From positions 1 to 60,065 of the forward strand of contig DF237490.1 of assembly GCA_000708835.1 (NCBI GenBank): a DNA stretch of 60,065 nucleotides, written 5' to 3'. The translations under genes were made by a program, and so were the position numbers. Positions 13,701 through 44,654 of this stretch are shown piece by piece. Position 1 is the stretch's first letter. Every line of letters begins with the position of its first letter. The notes under the pieces are model-generated. The model was not told the origin of the DNA. It did no database searches and worked only from the letters and a program-made list of their open reading frames with translations. The DNA is from Klebsormidium nitens (taxonomy: Eukaryota > Plantae > Klebsormidiophyceae).

Positions 13701-16700
13701 TTTTGCCATAGCGTAGAAAACACTGCGTCTCACAGGAGAAGAAGACGAGCAGGACTGCAAAACAAAATGCTGAATCCTTCGAACAACCCCCTCGCATACT
13801 TCGTCTATTTCTTCGATTCCCATCCGGTCCGATCGCAACCAGGTGGTTGTTTAGCTATGGCGCCTTGAAACAAGGCGAGTAACGCCAGTCGTATTGCACA
13901 ACCACCAATACAACCGATCCACGCAAGCGAGAGCCCTGTTGACAACAAAGGGTGTGTTCGAACCTCGGGCAAGAAACGCTCCAGCAAGCATTGTCGCCCT
14001 CTGCCTCACCTCCCACTTGTCCCCCTTCTGAACCCGCTCGCACTTGTACTGGAACTTGAGCTCGTCCCCACTGATCCCCCCCGCCAGGAAGCGTCGCTCC
14101 ACCAGCTTCACGTACCGCTCCTTGCGCCACCCGATCACGTGGGTCGTCAGGCCCGGCCGTTTGGACTTCCAGACGAAGATCGGGACTACGGTCCCGTGGT
14201 CGCGAGACTCGGGGACCGGGTGGAAGGGACCGTCCATTCCATCGCTCCCGGGAACCACCAACCTGTACACTAAACAGATGTAAATCGCCGTCGAATACTT
14301 GACAAGATTTCTGAAGGGGAATAACTCATACTGGACTACGAGGCAGACTCCTCGGTCATGTTCTGTTTCCCAAGACAGTCCCAGCACGGTAAAGGAGGAC
14401 TGCCGGAACCAAGAAAACCCAAAGTGGAAAATCTGCGGGAGTCCAAAAACCTTGCCGCTCGGATGGCACAGCCAACAGCTCTGTATGCAAATAAAGCAAC
14501 AAAGGTTCGAAGCTTTCAAATGGTCCCAAACCCTGCCCTGTCCTTGCATCTGACGTTGTCGAAGGCCCACACAACCCACTGTTGTTCAAGGCTGCAAGAA
14601 CACTCTCTGGCCACCTTCAAACGCCCAAGAGTCGGCAATTCGGCCCTTGTTGCAACAGTCCCTTGCCTCTTACAAGTTAGGCCCTTGGCACTCCCAGGCT
14701 TGTTCCAGAAAGCTCCAGAACACACTCCAGGCTCCTTCTAATCCCAGTTGCTCTCCACGAGCCCCAATCCAAAAGAAACAAACGGCTCAGCCTCCGATCA
14801 AAATCCTCACCTGTTGCAGGTCAAGCTCTTGGCACTCCCGGGCTTTCCAACCACCACGATCTCCAGCGTCGCTTGCTCCAGCGCGCGCGTCTCCTTCACG
14901 ATCTGAGTCTCAAAGTCGACCGGCGTCTTCAGCTCGCCGATGGTGGACCTTATGGTTTCGTGCATGCTAATCACCATGTTGGCGAGTTCTAGGATGGGAG
15001 TTGGGTCCAGTTCCTCCTCCTTGGGCGTCGCATCCAGCGTGCCGCTGTAGAGAAAATGATGATGGAGTTCAATACAGGTGCTTCGAGTTAACAATCGTCG
15101 CTCGTGTTCCTGGGTTCATGAGAAAGCACCTCAGTACCAATTTTTCCAAAACTTGGGACTGCTATAACAGAACCTTTCGAAGGACGTTTAGAACCTCGAG
15201 CATGCCGCGATTCCTACTACGTAGCAAGGACAGGTTGTAAAAAGGGCTTGCAAAGAGCCTTGAAAAGGTGCACATGCTGGACGCAAAGATATCCCAGGCC
15301 ATACTGAAAAGGGGCCTTTGCTAAAAGGCCTTGAAGAAGTCTTTCCCTAAATCAGCGACGTTGGCTGGACCCGTCAAAGGAACTTTGAGGACCGGGGAAA
15401 GACTTGACAACACTTTAGTTCTGCAGGCCTTGACAGACCTTTGATCCCAAACAAAGCCAGGACAGACACTAACGACCTTCGTCTGCGTTAAGGCCGCGGT
15501 AAATATCAAGAGAGAGACGTTCTCAAAACTGTGCTCACTCGCGCAGGCGCGGCAGGGTGACGTCACGGAGGTGTGCCCTGAGCTGCTCCCTGGTGGCCTC
15601 GTTCTTGGTCACCTTGGCCAGGAACTTGTCTGCCAGCTCGAAGGACGTCAGGTTGATCACCTTCTCGTCCGCCATCTGAACATGTACAAAAGGTCTGCCG
15701 TCAGAGAGACTGCTTGACACTGTTGCAGACCTTAAAGGGCCTGCACTTGTCTAGCACACAACCTCGAAATCGAAGATAAATGGCAAGCAAGATGAACCTC
15801 CTCAATTTCGGCCACTGAAAACCGAAGGTAAGTTCTTGACTGCAGCGCTCCTAAAATGGTGCTAAACGAGGGTATCGTAAGACAACAGCCACACAGGGAC
15901 CGAATGCCCGCAACGTGACCTTGCAGTTGCTAAAAGCAGCGACGTGGTTCACAACCGCACCGACATGCAGTCATTAGCCAATTCTGAATGTCCTGCGAGC
16001 CACATGAGGCAGTGCCCTTTTCGAGAAAGCATAACCACGTCAGTTGGGCATCTGGTCTGACAGGTTTTTGCAACCAAACGAGATGCATGACAGCAGCATA
16101 AGACACTTTTAGGCTCGTACCTTGCTCAGCGCGAACTCTGGGCTGTACTGCCGTGCATTCTTCAAGCCGATCATGGTCCCCAGCTCCGACAGGACCAGGC
16201 GGCTCTCCCTCTCCCGTTGCTCTTGAAGCTCAGGAGTATTCTCCACACCTGGAAACAAGTTACAGCACCAAAAAAGAGTTAAGACCCTGCAAGACAAGAA
16301 GCTGATTATATTACGCACACAGCGACACCCGAGCAAAGTGACGACCAGAAGTGCCACGCCACCAAAATGCATCAATCAAGATGCACGAATGCCGCTCTGA
16401 TCAAACGCAATCGCAGCTCTCCTGATCTGCTGCGCACCCACGGTGTTGACCCGGAGCTGCCCACATTCGCTCTTCTTTCCTAAGCTCGTTGACATTCGCC
16501 AATTGAGTCAGCATAAGCAGAAGGTCAGAAAAGTCTATCTTGAACAAGCAAGCAAAGCAGCCCACCAGATCCCCACAGCCTGGCCGGCACAGCCACCCCA
16601 AATGGATAAAGAAGGCATGCATTTTGCTGATCCCCGCCGACCAAACAAGCATAAGCAAAAGGACACCAGAAAAGTGGCCCCAAACAGATAAGCAAGGGCG

Positions 16701-17978
16701 CCCACCTGGTCCCCACAACCTTGCCGGCACGTATACCCTGAACGGGCGGCCGAAGAAGTCGTACAACCGCTCCATCTTGACATCATCACCGCCCTGCTCA
16801 GCCTTGGGCCCCGCTACCCCCCCGCAACTTTCCGCTGGCTGGCTGTCGCTAGTCTCCGGAGTCGCTATATCATCCTCACCAAAGCTTCCTATTGCCGCAG
16901 CCCTGGGCATTGCCCTCCCGCCTAAGCTCCCGGCTCGCCTGTCTGAGTTTGCCCCCAGTTGACTTTCCTGAGTTTCCACACATGCTTCTGAGTGCAGTTG
17001 CTCGCTGTCAGTGTCGGTTGCCCCTCGCATCCCTTGACTCGTTGCTACCAGGATAAGTGCTCTCTTGCCTGGACTTGCAGAGGCTTGCTTACGGCTCGCC
17101 GGCACCGCACGCTTTGCAGGTGCACTGGCCTCTTTTCGTGCTTGAGCGACAGGGCGCATCAGCGATTGCGGCAGACTGGCAGCCTTTGCTTGCAGAAGCG
17201 TCCCACTAATGTGTTTTGGAACGTCCTGCTTTCCCACAATCTCGCGCGCAACGAGCTTGCTGCTCCCTGCGGTCGACACACTCCTGCTACCCTTGATTAG
17301 GGTTTCGCTTCTGACGGGTTCCGCAGACAAAGCAAACTTTTCATTTCCATAAGGCTCAGACCAGCTTGACATTGGCTCCGAGTCCTCCTTGAAGCTAGAC
17401 TGCGACCCCTCAAGCGTTCGGCGCCTCCGCACTGGTTTCTTTGCCACTTCTACAAGCCGCCGCTTCAAATGCTTCCCGCCTTTCTCAGGGTCTTCCAGCG
17501 CCCATGGTGCTGGGGGGCTAGGCTCTCTGTTGCAGCCCATAAAATGCACAGACTCTTGGGAAAGAGGTAGACTGGCGGTAAAATCAGAGGAGGTGTCTAT
17601 GCTAGCAGGGAGTGCAGCATCACGACCAATGCTGCTGACGCCCCAAGTCTCGTGGCTGCTTGTCTGGGAGTTAGACAGGCTCAGAAGGCACTCTGCAGAT
17701 GCCACAATGCTGTCCTCGTTCTCCAAAGAATCAAAAGCACTTTGCTTATGTGACTGCTGAGGCAACCTTGCATGAGGCTGCCAAGTCTCTTTGACCTGTT
17801 CCCTGATTTTTGGCAACTCCGTTGAGAGAAATGTGCGATCCCCGCTACGCCGACTGCCCCAGAAAGAACGCTTCCCCTTGACTGGCTGCACTGCTTCTTC
17901 CAGCTTCTGCTTCTTGGCAGCTGGCAACGCAAGAATAGCCAATGTCTGCTCCTCTAGGTATTCTCTCCCCTTTGCCAT
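7740..17978 (-). CDS. Dynamin-superfamily-like (NUGGC/SLIP-GC or bacterial dynamin-like type) P-loop GTPase, 1227 aa, with a long low-complexity N-terminus
   Basis: 14 phase-consistent exons: 17978-16706, 16248-16121, 15675-15539, 15044-14811, 14262-14010, 13615-13397, 12664-12431, 11877-11704, 10909-10787, 10342-10245, 9720-9525, 9205-9107, 8806-8578, 8026-7740. Motifs: G1 LEIVVVGKPGSAKS, G2-like DHGTVVPIF, G3 ELG-DMVG (split by a splice junction), G4 region PVVVCPEK. Followed by a helical C-terminal stalk-like region. Confidence 0.75.
12728..12776 (-). repeat. Intronic copy of the G3-exon 5' end (12621-12669) with an intact acceptor
   Basis: 45/49 nt identical. The copy reads gtgcag|MIGFKEQETALSDVRA-stop. 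Confidence 0.9.
14664..14706 (-). repeat. Intronic copy of the G1-exon 3' end (14808-14848)
   Basis: About 28/35 nt identical. Encodes KPGSAKGLTCKR versus KPGSAKSLTCNR. The donor GT has become GC. Confidence 0.8.
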
Positions 17979-24224: not shown

Positions 24225-27200
24225 CTAGCTGCTGCTTGAAGCTTGGAGTGTTCTTTTTGCGGATTTGAGCGTGTTTTGAAGCAAGACTGCAATTGTCATT
24301 GGCCCTACGCCTCCAGGAACTGGCGTGATTGCTCCTGCTACTTTCCGCGCCTCCTTGTAATCGACATCGCCCACTAGCCGGTAGCCCCTCTTGTCGCTTG
24401 GATCCTGTAGAAAATGGTAACCAGATTCAGCTTTTGGATTCTAGTAGGGACATAAGACGTGAGATCTGATCAAGCATTCAGCCGCCTGAACATTCAGAAA
24501 AGGGACTGTCAGCGGTTTACGACGGATGTGACAGCTCGAGCACTAGACGCGCGGTACAAAATCGTGTTTTCTCGTTGAAAAAATAGTCGTTGTAGCCCAA
24601 ACGCTGACCGGTGCCAATGGCATATTAGCGTGCCCGTTTTTTGTTCCTATATGGACAATACGACTCGCAAAGACCTCGGCAAGCCTCTTTTCAAACAGCG
24701 AAGCCCGCCCACCACGCCAAGCAATCAGCCTACAAATGCATGCAACAAACGACTGAGTGGTGATTCTGAACAGCAGGCCGAATCGTCTTGCCCCTTCCAA
24801 TCGCAACTTCGAGAGACGCAAGAAGAATCATTTCACTTCGATGCGCGGACCAAAGTCGGAATTGGAAGCACACTCAGCAGCCCTTACGTCAACAGCGTTG
24901 ATGCCGACATCGATGACAACCGCCCCCGGCTTCAGCCAGTCCGCCTTTACGAACTCCGCCTTGCCAATTGCCGCAATCACGATGTCAGCGCGCCGAGTAT
25001 GCTCCGCAGGGTTCGGGGTTCGGGAGTGGACAACGGTCACTGTGGCGTTTAGTTTCTGCCAGAGAGAGGGAGGGAGGGTGAGGGAAGGAGATAGAAAGTC
25101 GCTAGCGACTCCGCAATTGTGGTGACGTGCTCCACAGAAGATGGGGCTTCGAGAGACGACCATTTGGAACCTCGAATTTGGTGGCAGATCGGCAGAGGGG
25201 ATGTGGTGATTGCAAAGCGAAGCACGTACCAAGCAAGGCTGCCATTACAAGTGCTATGGCAGAGTCGGAGTCTGTGAGTGGACGACAGTCAACGTAAAAA
25301 TCAATCGCTAACGAAGCGAGAAGGAAACGTAAGGTTAAGAGAACTAGATTTTGGAGTCTTCTGCGTTTCCGAAGAGCGGGTCTAACATCAAGGCGCCAGA
25401 AGCACTATGACGAAAGGAGAGCCGCTCGCCCGAAGCGCGATGACAAAATGAGAGCCGCTCGAAAAGAGGAAATCAGGGACGGGCGCCAAACAAGCCTCAG
25501 ATTTGTGCTCGAAGTTCAATGCTCGAAGTTCAAGATATCTTTAAACCGTTCTCTCTGATACGACGATCGAGAACCGCTCAAAACTCGAAACACAGCGAAG
25601 GGCCCAGAAAATTGTTGACCTCAAATCGACAACAAAACAAAAGCTTTCCTTTCTGATCAGTAGCGATCGAACCAATCAAGGTTGGTGCGACAACAATGCT
25701 GTGTCCTGGTATCAGGTTCCATCTAAGCTCATCCCTGACGTTCTTAACAACCAAGAGAACACCTACGTGAAGATTGTCACACACTCCGATGCTTTACAAG
25801 TACATCCAAGCACGTACGCCGTTCCGCTTGGATAGCCTGCCCCCCAAGATCGCTCAGTTTTCATGATCCCAAAGCCCAAAACCTGCGGCTCCACCTCAAA
25901 TTCACGGGCTCCGAATCAGAAAAATCTCAAGACCACGAGACCTGGAGCCAGGCGACCAAAATCTTGGAGGCTCTCAGATTACTCTGACGCCTGAATGCCC
26001 ATCTTCACCCTGAGCCCGGATCTTTTCCTCACCTGTAAAAGCAGCGCCGCAGGCATGCCGACCGTCTTGCTCCGCCCCAGAACCACCGCATACTTCCCCG
26101 CAATCTGCACCCCCGTCCGTTGCAGCAGCTCGATGCACCCGGCCGGCGTGCACGCCACAAACAAGGGATCCCTCTGCTGCATTGCGAGCGTGCCAACGTT
26201 GACAGGGTGGAAGCCGTCGACGTCCTTCTCGACGGAGACGGCGCTTAGGATGCGCTGCTCGTTGATGTGGGAGGGGAGGGGGAGCTGGATCAGGATGCCG
26301 TGGACTTCGGGGTTGGCATTGAAGTCGGTCACGATCTGCAGGCTTTCAGAAAGTGTTTTCAGGTCCATTTCTTGAAAGATAGGAGCGAGAAAACGACTAC
26401 GGTAACCAATCGTTTCTCGTGTTGAATGAGGGAAGGTGGGATCCGCCTGAGAGCGGGGCAAAGAAGACTACTTTCCCGATGTCAGGGAAGAAAGATCTGG
26501 GGGCGATTGCAATGATGCTGATCGAGTTACAAAACGACAGTCCTTTTCTGAACAAGAAAGATATCGCGCTCTAGACCCGCAAGGTGCATTACATAGAACT
26601 TTTGGCTTCGGCGAACTGGCTGACCTTGAGAGTATCTTGGAATGCATTCTCGTTAAGGAAAATGTTCTAAAATAATTGATCAAGGCCCCCGGTTGAGAAA
26701 TCCAAGAGAATGCAAACCGTTTTCGTACACGGTGCTGGAGGCAAATGGAACTGCAACGAGCCAGAGAAGTCCGTCGCAATGAAAAATCACAATTTGAAGC
26801 GAAACAAACCGAAGAACCTGATGTAAGATCCGCATATGCCAAACAACAACAGAATCCGCATCAAAAGGCAATGAAGAGAACAAAGCTAAGCTGAAGGACA
26901 GAACAAGCCAAAGAACACGCCGGGAGCTTGTCCTTGCATCAGACGGGGTTCCCCCCAATCCTCTCACCTTTAAAAACATCAAACAGCACCTATACTGATG
27001 CTGATCATCTAAGCGCTTTAATGTCACATTTCAGAAAGTGACCCGAAGCCCCAGTATCAACTGCAGAAACATTTGTGTTTGACCACACGAGCCCGCACCT
27101 TTAGGAGCTCGTCTTCAGAGACGTCCTCCGGCAGGTCCGCATCAAAGGACTTGATCCCGACCTCCACGCACGCCTTCTTCTTGCTCCGCACGTACGTTTG

Positions 27201-28666
27201 TGAATCTTTTCGTGACCCCACCAGAACCACCGCCAGCCCAGGCACCTACTCCAACGGAAAGGGCTGTAAGAAAGGAGCTGAAAACATACAGGAAAATCGG
27301 AAAGAATTCTAGAAGCGCAGGAAGGAGAGAAGTCCAGTGGCAGAAGCTCACAGTTCATTTGTGCTTTTGTTTCATGGCAACAAAGAGGCCGTTGGGAAAA
27401 CTGCAAAAATAGTCCTCAAACAAGAACAAGTACTTTCTCCACACTTGCAAAAGTGGTGGGGCAAACCTCAAAACCCCCAGATCAGCACTCCAAATCATTA
27501 ATTCCAGATCAATGTAATTGCACCTGAAGTAGAAACTTTGTACGTATCAAAGTTGCACTCTCAGCTTTCTGGCACTAGTTGATACATGCACATCCGAAGC
27601 ATCCGGCACGTCTGCACGACGCAGCAAGCCTCAAGCACGCAGCCACCATTACCAAGTTTGCAACTCAAGATTCTTCTAAAAGGTCCACCAACTGCAGGAA
27701 TCATACCACCAATCNNNNNNNNNNNNNNNNNNNNNNNNNNNNNNNNNNNNNNNNNNNNNNNNNNNNNNNNNNNNNNNNNNNNNNNNNNNNNNNNNNNNNN
27801 NNNNNNNNNNNNNNNNNNNNNNNNNNNNNNNNNNNNNNNNNNNNNNNNNNNNNNNNNNNNNNNNNNNNNNNNNNNNNNNNNNNNNNNNNNNNNNNNNNNN
27901 NNNNNNNNNNNNNNNNNNNNNNNNNNNNNNNNNNNNNNNNNNNNNNNNNNNNNNNNNNNNNNNNNNNNNNNNNNNNNNNNNNNNNNNNNNNNNNNNNNNN
28001 NNNNNNNNNNNNNNNNNNNNNNNNNNNNNNNNNNNNNNNNNNNNNNNNNNNNNNNNNNNNNNNNNNNNNNNNNNNNNNNNNNNNNNNNNNNNNNNNNNNN
28101 NNNNNNNNNNNNNNNNNNNNNNNNNNNNNNNNNNNNNNNNNNNNNNNNNNNNNNNNNNNNNNNNNNNNNNNNNNNNNNNNNNNNNNNNNNNNNNNNNNNN
28201 NNNNNNNNNNNNNNNNNNNNNNNNNNNNNNNNNNNNNNNNNNNNNNNNNNNNNNNNNNNNNNNAGCAGGCCCCCACCTTCCCTGTCTCCGCCTTCAAGCT
28301 TTCCACACCCTGTCCAATCTCCTTCCTCAGCTGCGCAGCGATCGCCTTGCCGTCGATGACGTCAGCGACCTTCTCCTCCGCTACAGCCCCTGCATTCCCC
28401 ACTGCTTGCGGTGCAGCAAGCTGGTCTGCTTTCTGTGGCTCCATCCTCCCAAATCCTAGCTTGATCTTTGGTTGAAAATTAGCTCTAGCAGAGATCAACT
28501 GGAAGGGTGCAATCGAAGAAGGGGCCAAGGGTGCGGCGGTTCCAATCACTCTAAGAGGGGTGAGTGAGAAAGGGCTTTGGTGGGATGCTTTCAGGGCAGC
28601 AGAAGAGCAGTCTTGGAACAGCACACCCCCCAATGATGCAGAATTCCGAAGGCACGCCGCGGCCAT
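24225..28666 (-). CDS. folD: Bifunctional methylenetetrahydrofolate dehydrogenase/cyclohydrolase, 395 aa, with an organellar transit peptide
   Basis: Exons 28666-28277, 27245-27099, 26335-26033, 25055-24888, 24404-24225. Canonical motifs: [74 protein letters not shown]. Ser/Ala-rich N-terminal extension. Confidence 0.97.
27715..28263. other. Assembly gap (N run) inside FolD intron 1
   Basis: Continuous run of n. The flanking FolD exons join in phase, so no coding exon appears to be missing. Confidence 0.99.
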
Positions 28667-29324
28667 CGGCCTCAGGAGCGGCCGCAGGACGCCCGTCGTA
28701 TGTCCTTCCACTAGCCGTGAATGCCCGGGGCAATTGTCAATAGCAGATAACAATTAGCTGTTATTGTTACTAAAGCGGTTGATTCTCAGCTGGATCAAGC
28801 GACATTCTTCGCAATGCCACTGGCATCACTTTTCCTCTCCATTTGTGTAGTCGAGTAGAACACACACACACGAGCCCGGTATAAAATGGGTCGGCAGAGC
28901 CAACGGGATGGAAGGTGTCATCCCTGCCCTGGCGACATACTGTGCCGTTTGTGGGGAGAAAGCGTCGCCCTTCCACAAACGCATAGCCGTGACACTATTG
29001 GTGCAGTCTTATCCAGTCGTAGGTCTAGGTTTGTCAATTGTGTCAAGAAGGCCGGTGAAAGGCAGGGCAGCCTGCAGATTCCGAATCCCATGAACCTGAA
29101 CTTGAAGTTGAACTGTTGAAGCTTGTCTTGAAGTTGGAATTTTCAGATGCGTCTGGGTCAACCATGGCGCCCTCTGTGGCGTCACGACAGGAAAACTTGG
29201 TATAGCGCTTGCAGGAGGCAAGCTTAGGGCCTGGTCAATCTCAAACTTAAAGTGCTTCTCGTCCAGTCGAAGCGCAGGCCCTGGATTCCAATTCTGAAGC
29301 CACCATCTTTCAGAACTTGAGACC

Positions 29325-41196: not shown

Positions 41197-44100
41197 CTAA
41201 GAGAAGGCAGACCTGATGTCCGAAATCTGCGCCCCGAGGACCTTGTAAGTCCCGCTGTCCGAGTTGAAGGAGGTCGCCGTGATCTGCGTCTTGCTGCACG
41301 TGTCCACGGTGTTCTGAATGGTTTTGGAGCTGCTGGAGTAGAAGGGCCAGAAGCCCCCCGAGATGTTCTGTTGGAAGTAGCTCCTTTCGTCGTCGGACCA
41401 GTCGGCCTCCCTGCAGCGAGACAGCGGAGATCATCTGAATGCTTTCAGGAAGTTCGGACACGGAAGCTGGCTAAGACAAAAGTTTGATCGATTGACTGTG
41501 CAAATCAAAGGCGCCCACATATGTGTCCTCGCTCTTCCCGCCCGGGCTGGGGAGTCCAATCGCGAGTGCATCTTCTGGTGAGAAATAAATTTGAGCTCGG
41601 TCGCTCGGAGCAGTCATGGAGCGTCACACGACGAGATCGGGAAGGTCTTGCTGCTCCGGTCAAAGGTGCTCACAAGCGCGCCCGAAAGCACTCACATGGT
41701 CGTGGTGATCTTGAAGGGCCCCCGAACCACGTAGATGGAGTTGATGACACGTGGCACCTGGCCCTCCTGGTCGGCTCCGTTGCCGAAGAAGTTGGTCTGG
41801 CTGGTGGGGTCCTTCCAGATTGTCGAGTCACCGTTCAGGGCCGTCGCCATGACTGACGAATCGAACCAGGTGGTCTTGGCAGAGACCGGCACGGACACCA
41901 CCTTTCCGTAGGAAACCTGGGAATTGTGAAGCACAGCATTGGGTGGAGGAAAATCGTGACGATCTTGTGTGAGCGGCGCGAGAATCTTGTTTAGAATTGT
42001 TTTTGAAAAAGGGCGGCGTTTGGGTTCCACTTTCAAGAGCGTGGGCTCCTTGCACTTCAATCAAGCGAAGCTTGTCAACTGTTATAGAGAGACCGCAGCA
42101 ACAAAGCAGCATCTTGAAGTTCTGGATTGTTAACGAAGGAAAGGACAAATACTGAAGCTACAGCGGACTTAATGCAAGGCCTGAAGAAGATTGCCGAAGC
42201 GTTGATGAAGACCTTGCCTCGTTACGAACAAGAAGAAAGAAAAACTAGGCTGCACCGAAGTGGGCCACAGAAAAACACTCTGACACTCGCATACAGTCCC
42301 CAATGAAAAGGCAGCCGACGCCGATGCTTACCGTGACCGTAACCTTTGCGTTGGCGATCTTGGAGCTGAGGCTGGTCGCGGTGGTGCTGGTGTCGCTGCC
42401 CCACCACAAGAATCTGTCATCAGACTCGGTGTGGGCATAAGCGGACGAGAGGTCGATGGCTGCCCCCTGGTTGTCGAAGGTAAAGTTGATAGCAGACCCG
42501 CCATTGAGCATGCTCTTCAGTGCCTGCTCCAAGCAAGTAATCAGAGTGAGTCCCCACATTGGCACGCGAACAAAAATGGATATGGAACAGCCCTTTGGAT
42601 GCATCAAAAAAGTCGATGCCGTCTGAACGGAAGTCTCTGCCAGAGATGTCTGTTCAAAGCATGTCTAATCGCTGCTTTGGCTTCGGAGCACGCGGTACAA
42701 AGTCAGGCCAAAAAGAGCGCTTCCTTTGACCTGTAGAGTTACATACTCAATCTGCCTGAAGCACTTGAGTGCAGCACTTTGAAGCCACATAGACTAGCCA
42801 ATCAGTCCAAGCATGCATTGAATGTCGTTCTGATGACTGCCCTTGAACGTTTCTGTTCTAACGGATAGTGTCAAGCAAAGATATCACTGGCAAAAGGGGT
42901 CGCGTTTCAGATCAGAAAAGTGCGCAGCCCAACATGTGAGCGGTGGTTTACGCAATTCACCTTGATATCGGTCTCATAGAGCGTGGCGAAGTTCTTGGGG
43001 TTGTGCACCACATCCAGGGCCGCCTTGATTGGGTCGTCGGTCATGCTCAGGAAGGCTTCCTCGACCTCGGTAGCATCGCCGTTGAAGTTCTTGTCCGCCC
43101 ACGCGTTGAAGACGGCAGGCGTAATTTTGCCCTTGGCGGTCTTCTTGTACGTGTACCACTCGTCCAGCTGGTCGCCCATGGCGGCTTCGAACGCGCTGCC
43201 GTCATCGCCAGGGCTGAAAAAGAGGTCAATGCAACTCATTCTCGTGCTCAAAAAGGTGACGTGATTAGCTCTCCTGCTTTTCTTAGTCGTTCAAACAGAG
43301 TTGCCCATGTCGTGCTCTTCAATTGTGAGAACAGCTGCTTGATTGCGCAAAGTCCACACGAGACGTACCGGCAACCTTGAAGAACAGGAAAAGCTCATAG
43401 TCAGAGGCAAGGAAGCGCCACATGCACGCAGAATTGGTGTCATCGACTCACTTGAGCGGGGCGACAATGTTCTTGTACGCCTGATGGAAGTTGACCTTCC
43501 CTCCCAAGCTGCCAAACATGACTTTGTTCGGAATGCGGTCCATCTGATCCCACAGCTCCTTGCTCGTCGTGCCGAGGCTAACGGGGGTCTTCAGCGCCTG
43601 AAAGCCAGACGGATCAACCCCCAGCGCCTGGGCCAGCTGCATGTAATACCGGGAGGGCATCGAGGACGTGGGCACTTCGGCGGCCGCGCTGAGTGGCGCA
43701 ACCTTGGCCGCGGGCGGCGCCGCAAAGTAAAGGACTTGCCATCAGCAATCAACTTTGTTGCAATGAAGGTTCCCTTTTGGAAGCAAAAAGTCAGCGCTTA
43801 CCTTCACAACGCTACAAAGTGAACCGTCACGCTAGGTGGATCTTGCTGCCAAGTCGCAGAAGTGCGCTTTAGCTTTGAGCAAACGCTCAGAAACAGCGGG
43901 GCAGGTGAGCGACAGTAGAGACTGATTTCATAGGCACCGCCATTTCCGCGCAAGTCCAGTTCAATTGCAAGTCCAAGATCAGTCTCTCGTGCAAAAGTTC
44001 TAGGCCCCTCTTTAACGTAGTAAGATTGCTTACCTGATGTTGCCACCGCTTTTGGGACTATGCCCGCCCCCTGGTCCTTGGCAGTCCTGAGGCAAAGAGA

Positions 44101-44654
44101 AAGAAGGTTAAAGCTTCAGTGCACAGCCATGAAACTTCTCTTTCCGAATTCGACTGCTACCAAGCAGGTCCGCTTGCAGATGATATGTTCATCTCCTATG
44201 TGCTTCAAAAGGCTACCCAAAAGCATTTCTGTCCTTGAATCCGGATCAGAAGCAGCAAAAGGAGCGGCTGCTTCAACCAAGGACGCTTGGCAATTCTGCT
44301 GTCAAGATCTTCCAGGAACATTCTTGGCATGCCAATCTATGCCTCTCAAAAACTGTCTGCATGACCGGTGTGAACCCGTGCGAGCAATCGTCTGCAACAG
44401 GAAAAACATGACTCGTTCAGCAACAGGGTAAGAGACCAAATAAGAGACCAGACTCACCTTGGTCCACTCTGGTAGCCGCCGGCAGCTGCCACCAGTACGC
44501 GGGGCTTGAAGGAAGCGGCGACGTTCTGGGAGCGCCTAAGCGCCACAGGCGCCGTGCGGACTTGGTCGCCCATGAAGCTCGAAGATCTGCCAGCGCGTAG
44601 GGACGTCAAAGAAGCGGGCTGGGCGGCGCAGCTGAGCATGGAGGAGGCAGCCAT
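41197..44654 (-). CDS. Putative plastid-targeted hypothetical protein, 470 aa, beta-rich mature domain, possibly pore-forming-toxin-like
   Basis: Seven phase-consistent exons: 44654-44458, 44086-44034, 43734-43452 (AAG acceptor), 43213-42961, 42523-42332, 41916-41696, 41410-41197. The N-terminus MAASSMLSCAAQPASLTSLRAGRSSSFMG..VALRRSQNVAASFKPRVLVAA is a typical Ser/Ala/Arg-rich transit peptide. Exons 3-7 have strong C/G third-position bias. Confidence 0.8.

Follow-up and report, generated by a model that had tools for sequence, protein, structure and literature searches.

A bacterial-type protein with a gasdermin-like predicted fold and a putative chloroplast presequence in the alga Klebsormidium nitens

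We analysed a 60,065-nucleotide stretch of the genome of Klebsormidium nitens (contig DF237490.1 of assembly GCA_000708835.1, positions 1 to 60,065 of the forward strand; hereafter the window) and in it the gene KFL_005410065, which lies on the minus strand from 44654 to 41197 and is annotated in the database as encoding a hypothetical protein of 470 amino acids. By sequence comparison its mature part, of ~370 amino acids, belongs to a large, unnamed and almost wholly bacterial protein family; ahead of this part the alga has an extension that resembles a chloroplast transit peptide, and the predicted core of the family resembles that of the gasdermins. Gasdermins cause cell death by perforating membranes, and animals, fungi and bacteria are all known to have pore formers of this type; to our knowledge the green lineage has no described gasdermin. 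We tentatively read KFL_005410065 as a candidate pore former of bacterial origin that is imported into the plastid.

A bacterial-type gene in an algal genome

The database entry of the gene was retrieved by profile search; the gene reads from an ATG at 44654 to a TAG stop at 41199–41197 (minus strand), through seven exons in the deposited model. Its six introns, read from the DNA, are all of the GT-AG type and consistent in phase. The exons are as follows, with the part of the protein that each encodes and the evidence for it:

44458–44654, minus strand: exon 1, with the start codon and an Ala/Ser/Arg-rich, acid-poor presequence (residues 1–66) of transit-peptide-like composition; from composition and a predicted local distance difference test score (pLDDT) <50.
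44034–44086, minus strand: small exon of the deposited model, residues ~67–83, skipped in the shorter in-phase model; AG/GT borders in the sequence.
43452–43734, minus strand: exon for residues ~84–177, which comprise a hydrophobic stretch with Ala-Ala-Ala at its end, helix alpha1 (N-terminal and conserved) and the first strands, with an alternative acceptor at 43688; hhalign E 2.4e-9, family profile positions 86–154.
42961–43213, minus strand: exon with the helical insert, residues ~178–262 (modelled helices 184–253); hhalign E 3.7e-6, profile positions 160–235.
42332–42523, minus strand: exon with a beta strand, the first Ser/Thr-rich insert (coil 280–308) and the start of a long amphipathic strand; hhalign E 2.3e-6, profile positions 250–311.
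41696–41916, minus strand: exon with a long strand (322–336), conserved Trp-rich helices and a further long strand (382–401); hhalign E 1.3e-5, profile positions 339–390.
41197–41410, minus strand: last exon, encoding the second Ser-rich insert as well as a near-invariant G-x-W-P-F-aromatic loop and three strands at the C terminus, and ending with the stop codon at 41199–41197; hhalign E 6.9e-9, profile positions 398–465.

When the database entry of the protein (P0237) was compared with the window by tblastn, matches were returned at 44654–44457, 43735–43439, 43218–42961, 42571–42320, 41916–41695 and 41424–41200, and no second copy was found in the window. An alternative 5' model, encoding ~437 amino acids, skips the 53-base exon and uses the acceptor at 43688; it is equally in phase, and the two models differ in the N-terminal extension only. 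A gene spanning 41197–44654 had been proposed in a first-pass annotation made from the letters of the window alone, and this is confirmed: all of the peptide strings quoted there, including the presequence, SRYYMQ.., LWDQMDRIP, FHQAYKNIV, both inserts and the strands that flank them, fall in open exon frames and are present in P0237.

Searches of Pfam, NCBIfam and PDB sequences with single exons gave no match. Against plasmid records, tblastn of exon 2 returned one weak match (E 0.01), in a Photobacterium replicon, and exons 3 and 5 returned nothing. The unannotated open reading frame (ORF) in that Photobacterium replicon, of 399 amino acids, follows the motif order of the algal protein over its full length, and 91 proteins were retrieved with this ORF as query. 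With a search profile built from 50 of the 91, the family was found to comprise 463 clusters (50% identity) at E ≤ 0.001 among 1.84 billion representatives, 222 of them at E ≤ 1e-30. None of the 463 clusters has a Pfam domain on record, no model for the bacterial family was found in Pfam, NCBIfam or PADLOC, and our literature search found no paper on it. Members are typically "hypothetical proteins" of ~390 amino acids, of the kind seen in Photobacterium, Chryseobacterium and Corallococcus. The named members come from Vibrionaceae, Aeromonas, many Bacteroidota, Comamonadaceae and Desulfobacteraceae, and further from Rhizobium, Roseibium, Kordiimonas, Corallococcus, Halomonadaceae, Acidobacteriota, Actinomycetota and a cyanobacterial bin assigned to Stanieria; phage, IMG/VR and BFVD searches revealed no phage or viral members.

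The homology of the algal protein to this family is secure, since its five mature-part exons are collinear with the family profile (hhalign E values listed above), its residues 100–470 align with bacterial members at 26–32% identity (blastp E down to 1e-43), and it keeps the consensus residue in 14 of the 15 invariant or near-invariant columns of a 140-sequence alignment, a set of Trp, Phe, Gly and Pro residues that includes a W-P-F loop. The retention of these 14 positions also makes the protein look functional. P0237 scored 445 bits against a profile of two bacterial members and the window's five mature-part exons, a score that is in part a self-match. No invariant residues of catalytic type were seen, the conserved positions being mostly Trp, Phe, Gly and Pro, which suits a structural or membrane-active protein. 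The match to a family of uncharacterised bacterial and fungal proteins that had been proposed at first reading thus holds for the bacteria; fungal relatives are a lead only, from a single ESM Atlas cluster of 734 amino acids (commonest phylum Ascomycota) to which KFL_005410065 was matched structurally, with a template modelling (TM) score of 0.66 over 324 aligned residues.

In two sequence searches of the family no named eukaryote other than K. nitens appeared, and no close relatives of its protein were found in metagenome contigs. A word search with the K. nitens protein returned only the protein itself and one weak match, which is a weak blank, as the best 8,000 candidates by shared words were scored and these may have been filled by low-complexity words. 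The tree of the family was rooted using as outgroup the short paralogues that are encoded downstream of many bacterial members (described below), 11 of 12 of which form one clade with support of 100. In this tree the algal protein lies within the long-protein family, at successive nodes with support of 100, 99 and 99 in the Shimodaira–Hasegawa-like approximate likelihood ratio test (SH-aLRT), and FastTree agrees on its placement. It falls in a five-member clade (support 99) together with four metagenome proteins, and the sister of this clade (97) contains actinobacterial, myxobacterial, cyanobacterial, gammaproteobacterial and acidobacterial members. The exact sister of the algal protein is unsure, because its branch is long (1.15–1.2 substitutions per site, with a best identity of 32%) and long branches meet in the five-member clade.

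The nesting of the alga among bacteria, together with six introns and a GC content like that of the flanks of the gene, favours transfer from a bacterium to the algal nuclear genome, probably followed by the gain of the six introns and of an N-terminal extension of ~100 amino acids. This is the pattern to be expected from the horizontal acquisition and intron gain that the first-pass annotation had put forward. Bacterial contamination of the assembly was considered and rejected, being excluded by the presence of six GT-AG introns in a gene whose GC content matches its flanks. An endosymbiotic origin was judged less likely than a later transfer, as none of the other plastid-bearing lineages searched has the gene, even though a cyanobacterial member from a Stanieria sp. 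metagenome-assembled genome (MAG; P0311 / P0082 cluster) lies in the sister clade of the algal clade.

N-terminal extension and possible destination

The extension of KFL_005410065 is Ala/Ser/Arg-rich, predicted to be disordered and absent from the bacterial kin, ~200 of 258 of which start directly at helix alpha1. Residues 1–60 consist of 22% Ala, 17% Ser and 10% Arg, with one acidic residue and a net charge of +6, and residues 1–89 are disordered in the AlphaFold model (pLDDT <50). Composition and disorder therefore fit the transit peptide suggested at first reading: the start is uncharged, the sequence is rich in Ser, Ala and Arg and poor in acidic residues, it is unstructured, and it has no equivalent in the bacterial homologues. 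As there is no hydrophobic core in residues 1–60, the presequence looks like a transit peptide and not like a signal for the endoplasmic reticulum.

In the deposited gene model, and not in the shorter one, a moderately hydrophobic stretch ending in Ala-Ala-Ala lies ~10 residues ahead of alpha1. A few alphaproteobacterial and metagenome members of the family possess a signal peptide of the Sec/Tat type, which ends in Ala-x-Ala just ahead of alpha1, and the algal Ala-Ala-Ala stretch occupies the same position as the cleavage site of those signal peptides. Because this hydrophobic stretch of the Ala-x-Ala-ending kind stands where some bacterial relatives have a signal peptide, the thylakoid lumen is a possible destination, and the arrangement suggests a two-part presequence that would direct the protein to the stroma first and to the thylakoid lumen next.

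Predicted fold and comparison with known pore formers

AlphaFold2 was used to model both KFL_005410065 (from an alignment of 139 homologues) and the bacterial member P0109. The algal model has a mean pLDDT of 80.7 and a predicted TM score (pTM) of 0.74, with nearly all of residues 100–470 above a pLDDT of 90, and the bacterial model has a pLDDT of 93.8 and a pTM of 0.89. In both, the chain opens with a long helix, more strongly conserved than any other segment, and continues through short strands and an insert of five helices to a sheet whose strands are long (15–20 residues) and joined by connecting helices; the common plan also includes two coil segments, and after the core there are only a loop and three short strands. 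The five-helix insert (algal residues 184–253, ~70 amino acids) is encoded almost exactly by one exon. Both coil segments of the algal model are Ser/Thr/Gly-rich (280–308, pLDDT ~70–85; 419–431, pLDDT ~75), and the second begins at the near-invariant Gly-x-Trp-Pro-Phe loop. The helical region followed by a beta-rich region with two Ser/Thr-rich inserts, which had been read from the translated sequence in the first-pass annotation, is thus recovered in the model as helices, long strands and coils.

Searching the PDB with Foldseek, nothing was found at E ≤ 0.001 for the algal model, chains of a bacterial gasdermin from Runella filling four of the top six rows with a best E of 0.02. For the bacterial model, the Runella gasdermin (E 0.0085) and a Vitiosangium gasdermin (E 0.03) were followed by pleurotolysin B (E 0.07), and gasdermins made up 9 of the top 18 rows; its helical insert (residues 91–153) matched generic helical bundles only. 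In a second alignment of the bacterial model the top five rows were all gasdermins, with 166–189 residues aligned of chains of 230–263 residues, thus covering ~70–75% of each gasdermin chain, compared to 55–95 residues in unrelated rows. Gasdermins in the pore state, whose strands are long, gave the best structural matches (8sl0, 6cb8, 9pe0). All of these gasdermin scores are weak, with Z <8, a root-mean-square deviation of 5–7 Å and no Foldseek match reaching E 0.001. The ESM Atlas's own model of the algal protein aligned over 222 residues to a 256-amino-acid cluster labelled Bact_GSDM by Pfam (TM score 0.59 on the target), and more weakly to a thiol-cytolysin cluster. The Pfam-named clusters nearest to the algal and Photobacterium proteins in language-model feature space are those of MACPF and thiol-cytolysin (0.85–0.87), which we regard as leads only. 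We infer from the models that the family core is probably gasdermin-like, with a helix at the N terminus packed on a twisted, long-stranded sheet and a bundle of helices (~70 amino acids) interrupting it, and that the two Ser/Thr/Gly-rich loops probably carry aromatic tips, one of the loops holding the near-invariant W-P-F motif.

Among known pore formers, the bacterial gasdermins (bGSDM; PF26164; PDB 7n50, 7n51, 7n52, 8sl0) provide the best and most complete structural matches, with an N-terminal helix on a twisted long-strand sheet that our models also show, and like the present family they are bacterial and patchily distributed across phyla. They are ~250 amino acids long, whereas the present family is of ~390 amino acids with the helical bundle inserted in the core, and it displays no sequence or profile similarity to bGSDM, no recognised inhibitory tail, no conserved protease neighbour and no N-terminal cysteine. 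Eukaryotic gasdermins and the fungal proteins RCD-1 and HET-Q1 have no sequence relation to the family; in eukaryotic gasdermins a helical C-terminal repressor follows the core, while in the present family a helical domain lies inside it. Neither the helical insert nor the C-terminal WPF loop has a counterpart in gasdermins.

Pore formers of the MACPF and cholesterol-dependent cytolysin (CDC) type, such as perforin, pleurotolysin B, MPEG-1 and pneumolysin, give weaker and less complete structural matches than the gasdermins do, and CDC domain-4 structures were not among the top 50 of either wide structural search. The MACPF signature motif (Y/W-G-T/S-H-F/Y-x6-G-G, PF01823) and the CDC undecapeptide (PF01289 / PF17440) were each found in none of 283 members, and an N-terminal cysteine for palmitoylation (Cys in the first six residues) in only one of them. 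No recognisable C-terminal inhibitory tail with an adjoining dedicated protease was found in 24 bacterial loci. Membership of the MACPF or CDC families was rejected, as signature motif, undecapeptide and Pfam matches are all absent.

Of the concepts in print, the pyroptolysins come closest to the present family; they are gasdermin-CDC chimeras, gasdermin-fold toxins of 325–400 amino acids from environmental Gram-negative bacteria, which show that gasdermin-fold proteins can be solitary, protease-independent pore formers, and which are defined by a C-terminal CDC-type immunoglobulin (Ig)-like sandwich holding a conserved Trp-Pro motif (bioRxiv 10.64898/2026.10.05.756811, October 2026). The present family is like them in its similar length, its environmental Gram-negative hosts, its lack of a protease partner and its conserved Trp-Pro motif. 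However, that motif is located in the Ig-like domain of pyroptolysins and in a core loop of the present family, the helical insert is present in the latter and not in the former, and the named genera do not overlap. Since neither of our models has a C-terminal CDC-type Ig-like domain, and the family has the helical insert, membership of the pyroptolysins was rejected as well. Approximately 25 of the 258 bacterial members carry an extra beta-rich module of ~100 amino acids; such a module lies N-terminally in P0092, P0093, P0094, P0118, P0066 and P0245 and C-terminally in P0116 and P0120. Pfam scans of members with such N- or C-terminal modules gave no match; the module could be a binding domain, with a role comparable to that of the Ig-like domain of pyroptolysins or CDCs.

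An AlphaFold-clustering study has described two unannotated gasdermin-like domain groups, which may or may not include the present family (bioRxiv 10.1101/2023.03.09.531927). Nothing relevant emerged from our literature searches, whether for the KFL_005410065 locus tag or for proteins resembling gasdermins in Klebsormidium or green algae.

In about two-thirds of the bacterial loci, a shorter paralogue (~276–340 amino acids) is encoded directly downstream of the long gene and on the same strand, for example at L001:5257-6087 (+), with the same placement in L002–L014 and L017. The short paralogue (hhalign E 2.7e-15 against the family profile) has an N-terminal signal peptide and is without the helical insert and the C-terminal strands. 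The long protein and its short paralogue may form a two-protein system, one component being cytoplasmic and the other exported. Other neighbours in these loci are unrelated regulators, transporters and the like. In a Roseibium MAG (L021:4421-6487 (+)), a subtilase (Peptidase_S8) lies directly upstream of a member with a Tat/Sec-like signal peptide. Fungal gasdermin-like proteins are activated by subtilases; the Roseibium subtilase is the sole protease neighbour among the 24 loci, and its position may be due to chance.

Possible function and competing explanations

The best reading of these results, which we would place somewhat short of an even chance, is that KFL_005410065 encodes a protein of gasdermin fold which enters an organelle, stays soluble at rest and forms pores once triggered. 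Import into the plastid would deliver a soluble monomer, which might pass onward to the thylakoid lumen; a trigger would cause it to bind membranes through its aromatic loops; and it would then oligomerise, its long strands and loops extending to form a beta-barrel pore. The part of a protease-cleaved tail would be taken by the helical insert, serving as the lock, and the role of the protein would lie in regulated death of the organelle or cell, or in defence. A broader proposal is that the entire family forms a large branch of the gasdermin superfamily that has gone unrecognised and has an inserted helical bundle, not a protease-cleaved tail, as its lock; the copy captured by a streptophyte alga would be sent to the chloroplast, perhaps to the thylakoid lumen, where its regulated pore formation would serve in the death of the organelle or cell. 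This we consider improbable as a whole; if true, the protein would be the first gasdermin-type executioner of the green lineage.

Several observations weigh against the reading as a triggered pore former. None of 115 members matches the Pfam families Gasdermin (PF04598), Bact_GSDM (PF26164), MACPF or Thiol_cytolysin even at E ≤ 1, and a PDB profile search with the family found no gasdermin. The Ser/Thr-rich loops display no clean alternation of hydrophobic and polar residues. Beside the bacterial genes there is no conserved protease or other activating partner in the 24 loci, the short paralogue being the only conserved neighbour. As regards location, targeting was assessed by eye and from composition only, and the lumen-like stretch depends on which of the two 5' gene models holds, both of which are in phase. 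Of the MACPF/CDC/gasdermin plan proposed in the first-pass annotation, it is the predicted fold neighbourhood that is retained, with gasdermins clearly first, if at weak scores, while membership by sequence in any of the three groups is not upheld.

It is unlikely, in our judgement, though well worth weighing, that the protein has a gasdermin-like fold and makes no pore, serving to bind membranes, lipids or glycans, for example as a scaffold or sensor whose aromatic loops dock while the sheet never inserts. Such a role would agree with the many conserved Trp, Phe and Pro residues on loops, with the lack of an activation partner in the bacterial loci, and with the confident prediction of the models as compact soluble proteins; moreover, a signal peptide is missing from most bacterial members, whose genes are single-copy and lie beside housekeeping or regulatory genes unrelated to them. 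It does not account so readily for the fact that the best structural matches are the pore-state gasdermins with long strands, or that MACPF and CDC pore formers are the nearest Pfam-named clusters of both the algal and the bacterial member in language-model space, leads though these are. We give less credence still to the possibility that the resemblance to gasdermins is coincidental, reflecting a common alpha/beta arrangement, and that a bacterial gene of unrelated function was kept because it was useful in the algal organelle. The weak structural scores, the absence of any profile-level sequence signal, and the helical insert and C-terminal WPF loop that gasdermins cannot match are what one would expect in that case. 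However, one small family tops every list, for two independently built models, with two aligners and with the ESM Atlas model, and the alignments cover ~70–75% of each gasdermin chain compared to 55–95 residues for unrelated matches, so that chance is not an easy explanation.

The gene might also be a decaying or unexpressed relic of transfer, or an artefact of annotation, and so be without present function. Its long branch and low best identity to any bacterial member could be taken in that sense, and there is no close relative for a test of selection. We nevertheless think this very improbable, as the frame is intact over seven exons with correct splice phases, the most conserved positions of the family are kept with a single exception, AlphaFold models the mature part with confidence throughout, and an extension of the targeting type has been added.

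Should the fold assignment hold, several hundred bacterial clusters would join the gasdermin superfamily with a different locking device, and the alga would represent a natural experiment in which a bacterial membrane-active protein has been given a new address in a photosynthetic organelle. Were the protein to form no pores, the gene would still offer a clean case of transfer from bacteria to a streptophyte, in the course of which introns and a presequence were gained, and, whatever its function, a widespread bacterial family that has no Pfam model has been flagged.

Two further features of the window lie apart from KFL_005410065. An uninterrupted ORF of 525 amino acids, without a Pfam match, is present at 16401–17978 (minus strand) and is unusual in an intron-rich window. 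Long ORFs overlapping on both strands (27579–28475, plus; 27701–28753, minus), which likewise have no Pfam match, occupy an AT-rich island at 27001–29000, where GC content is 0.34–0.41 compared to ~0.52 elsewhere.

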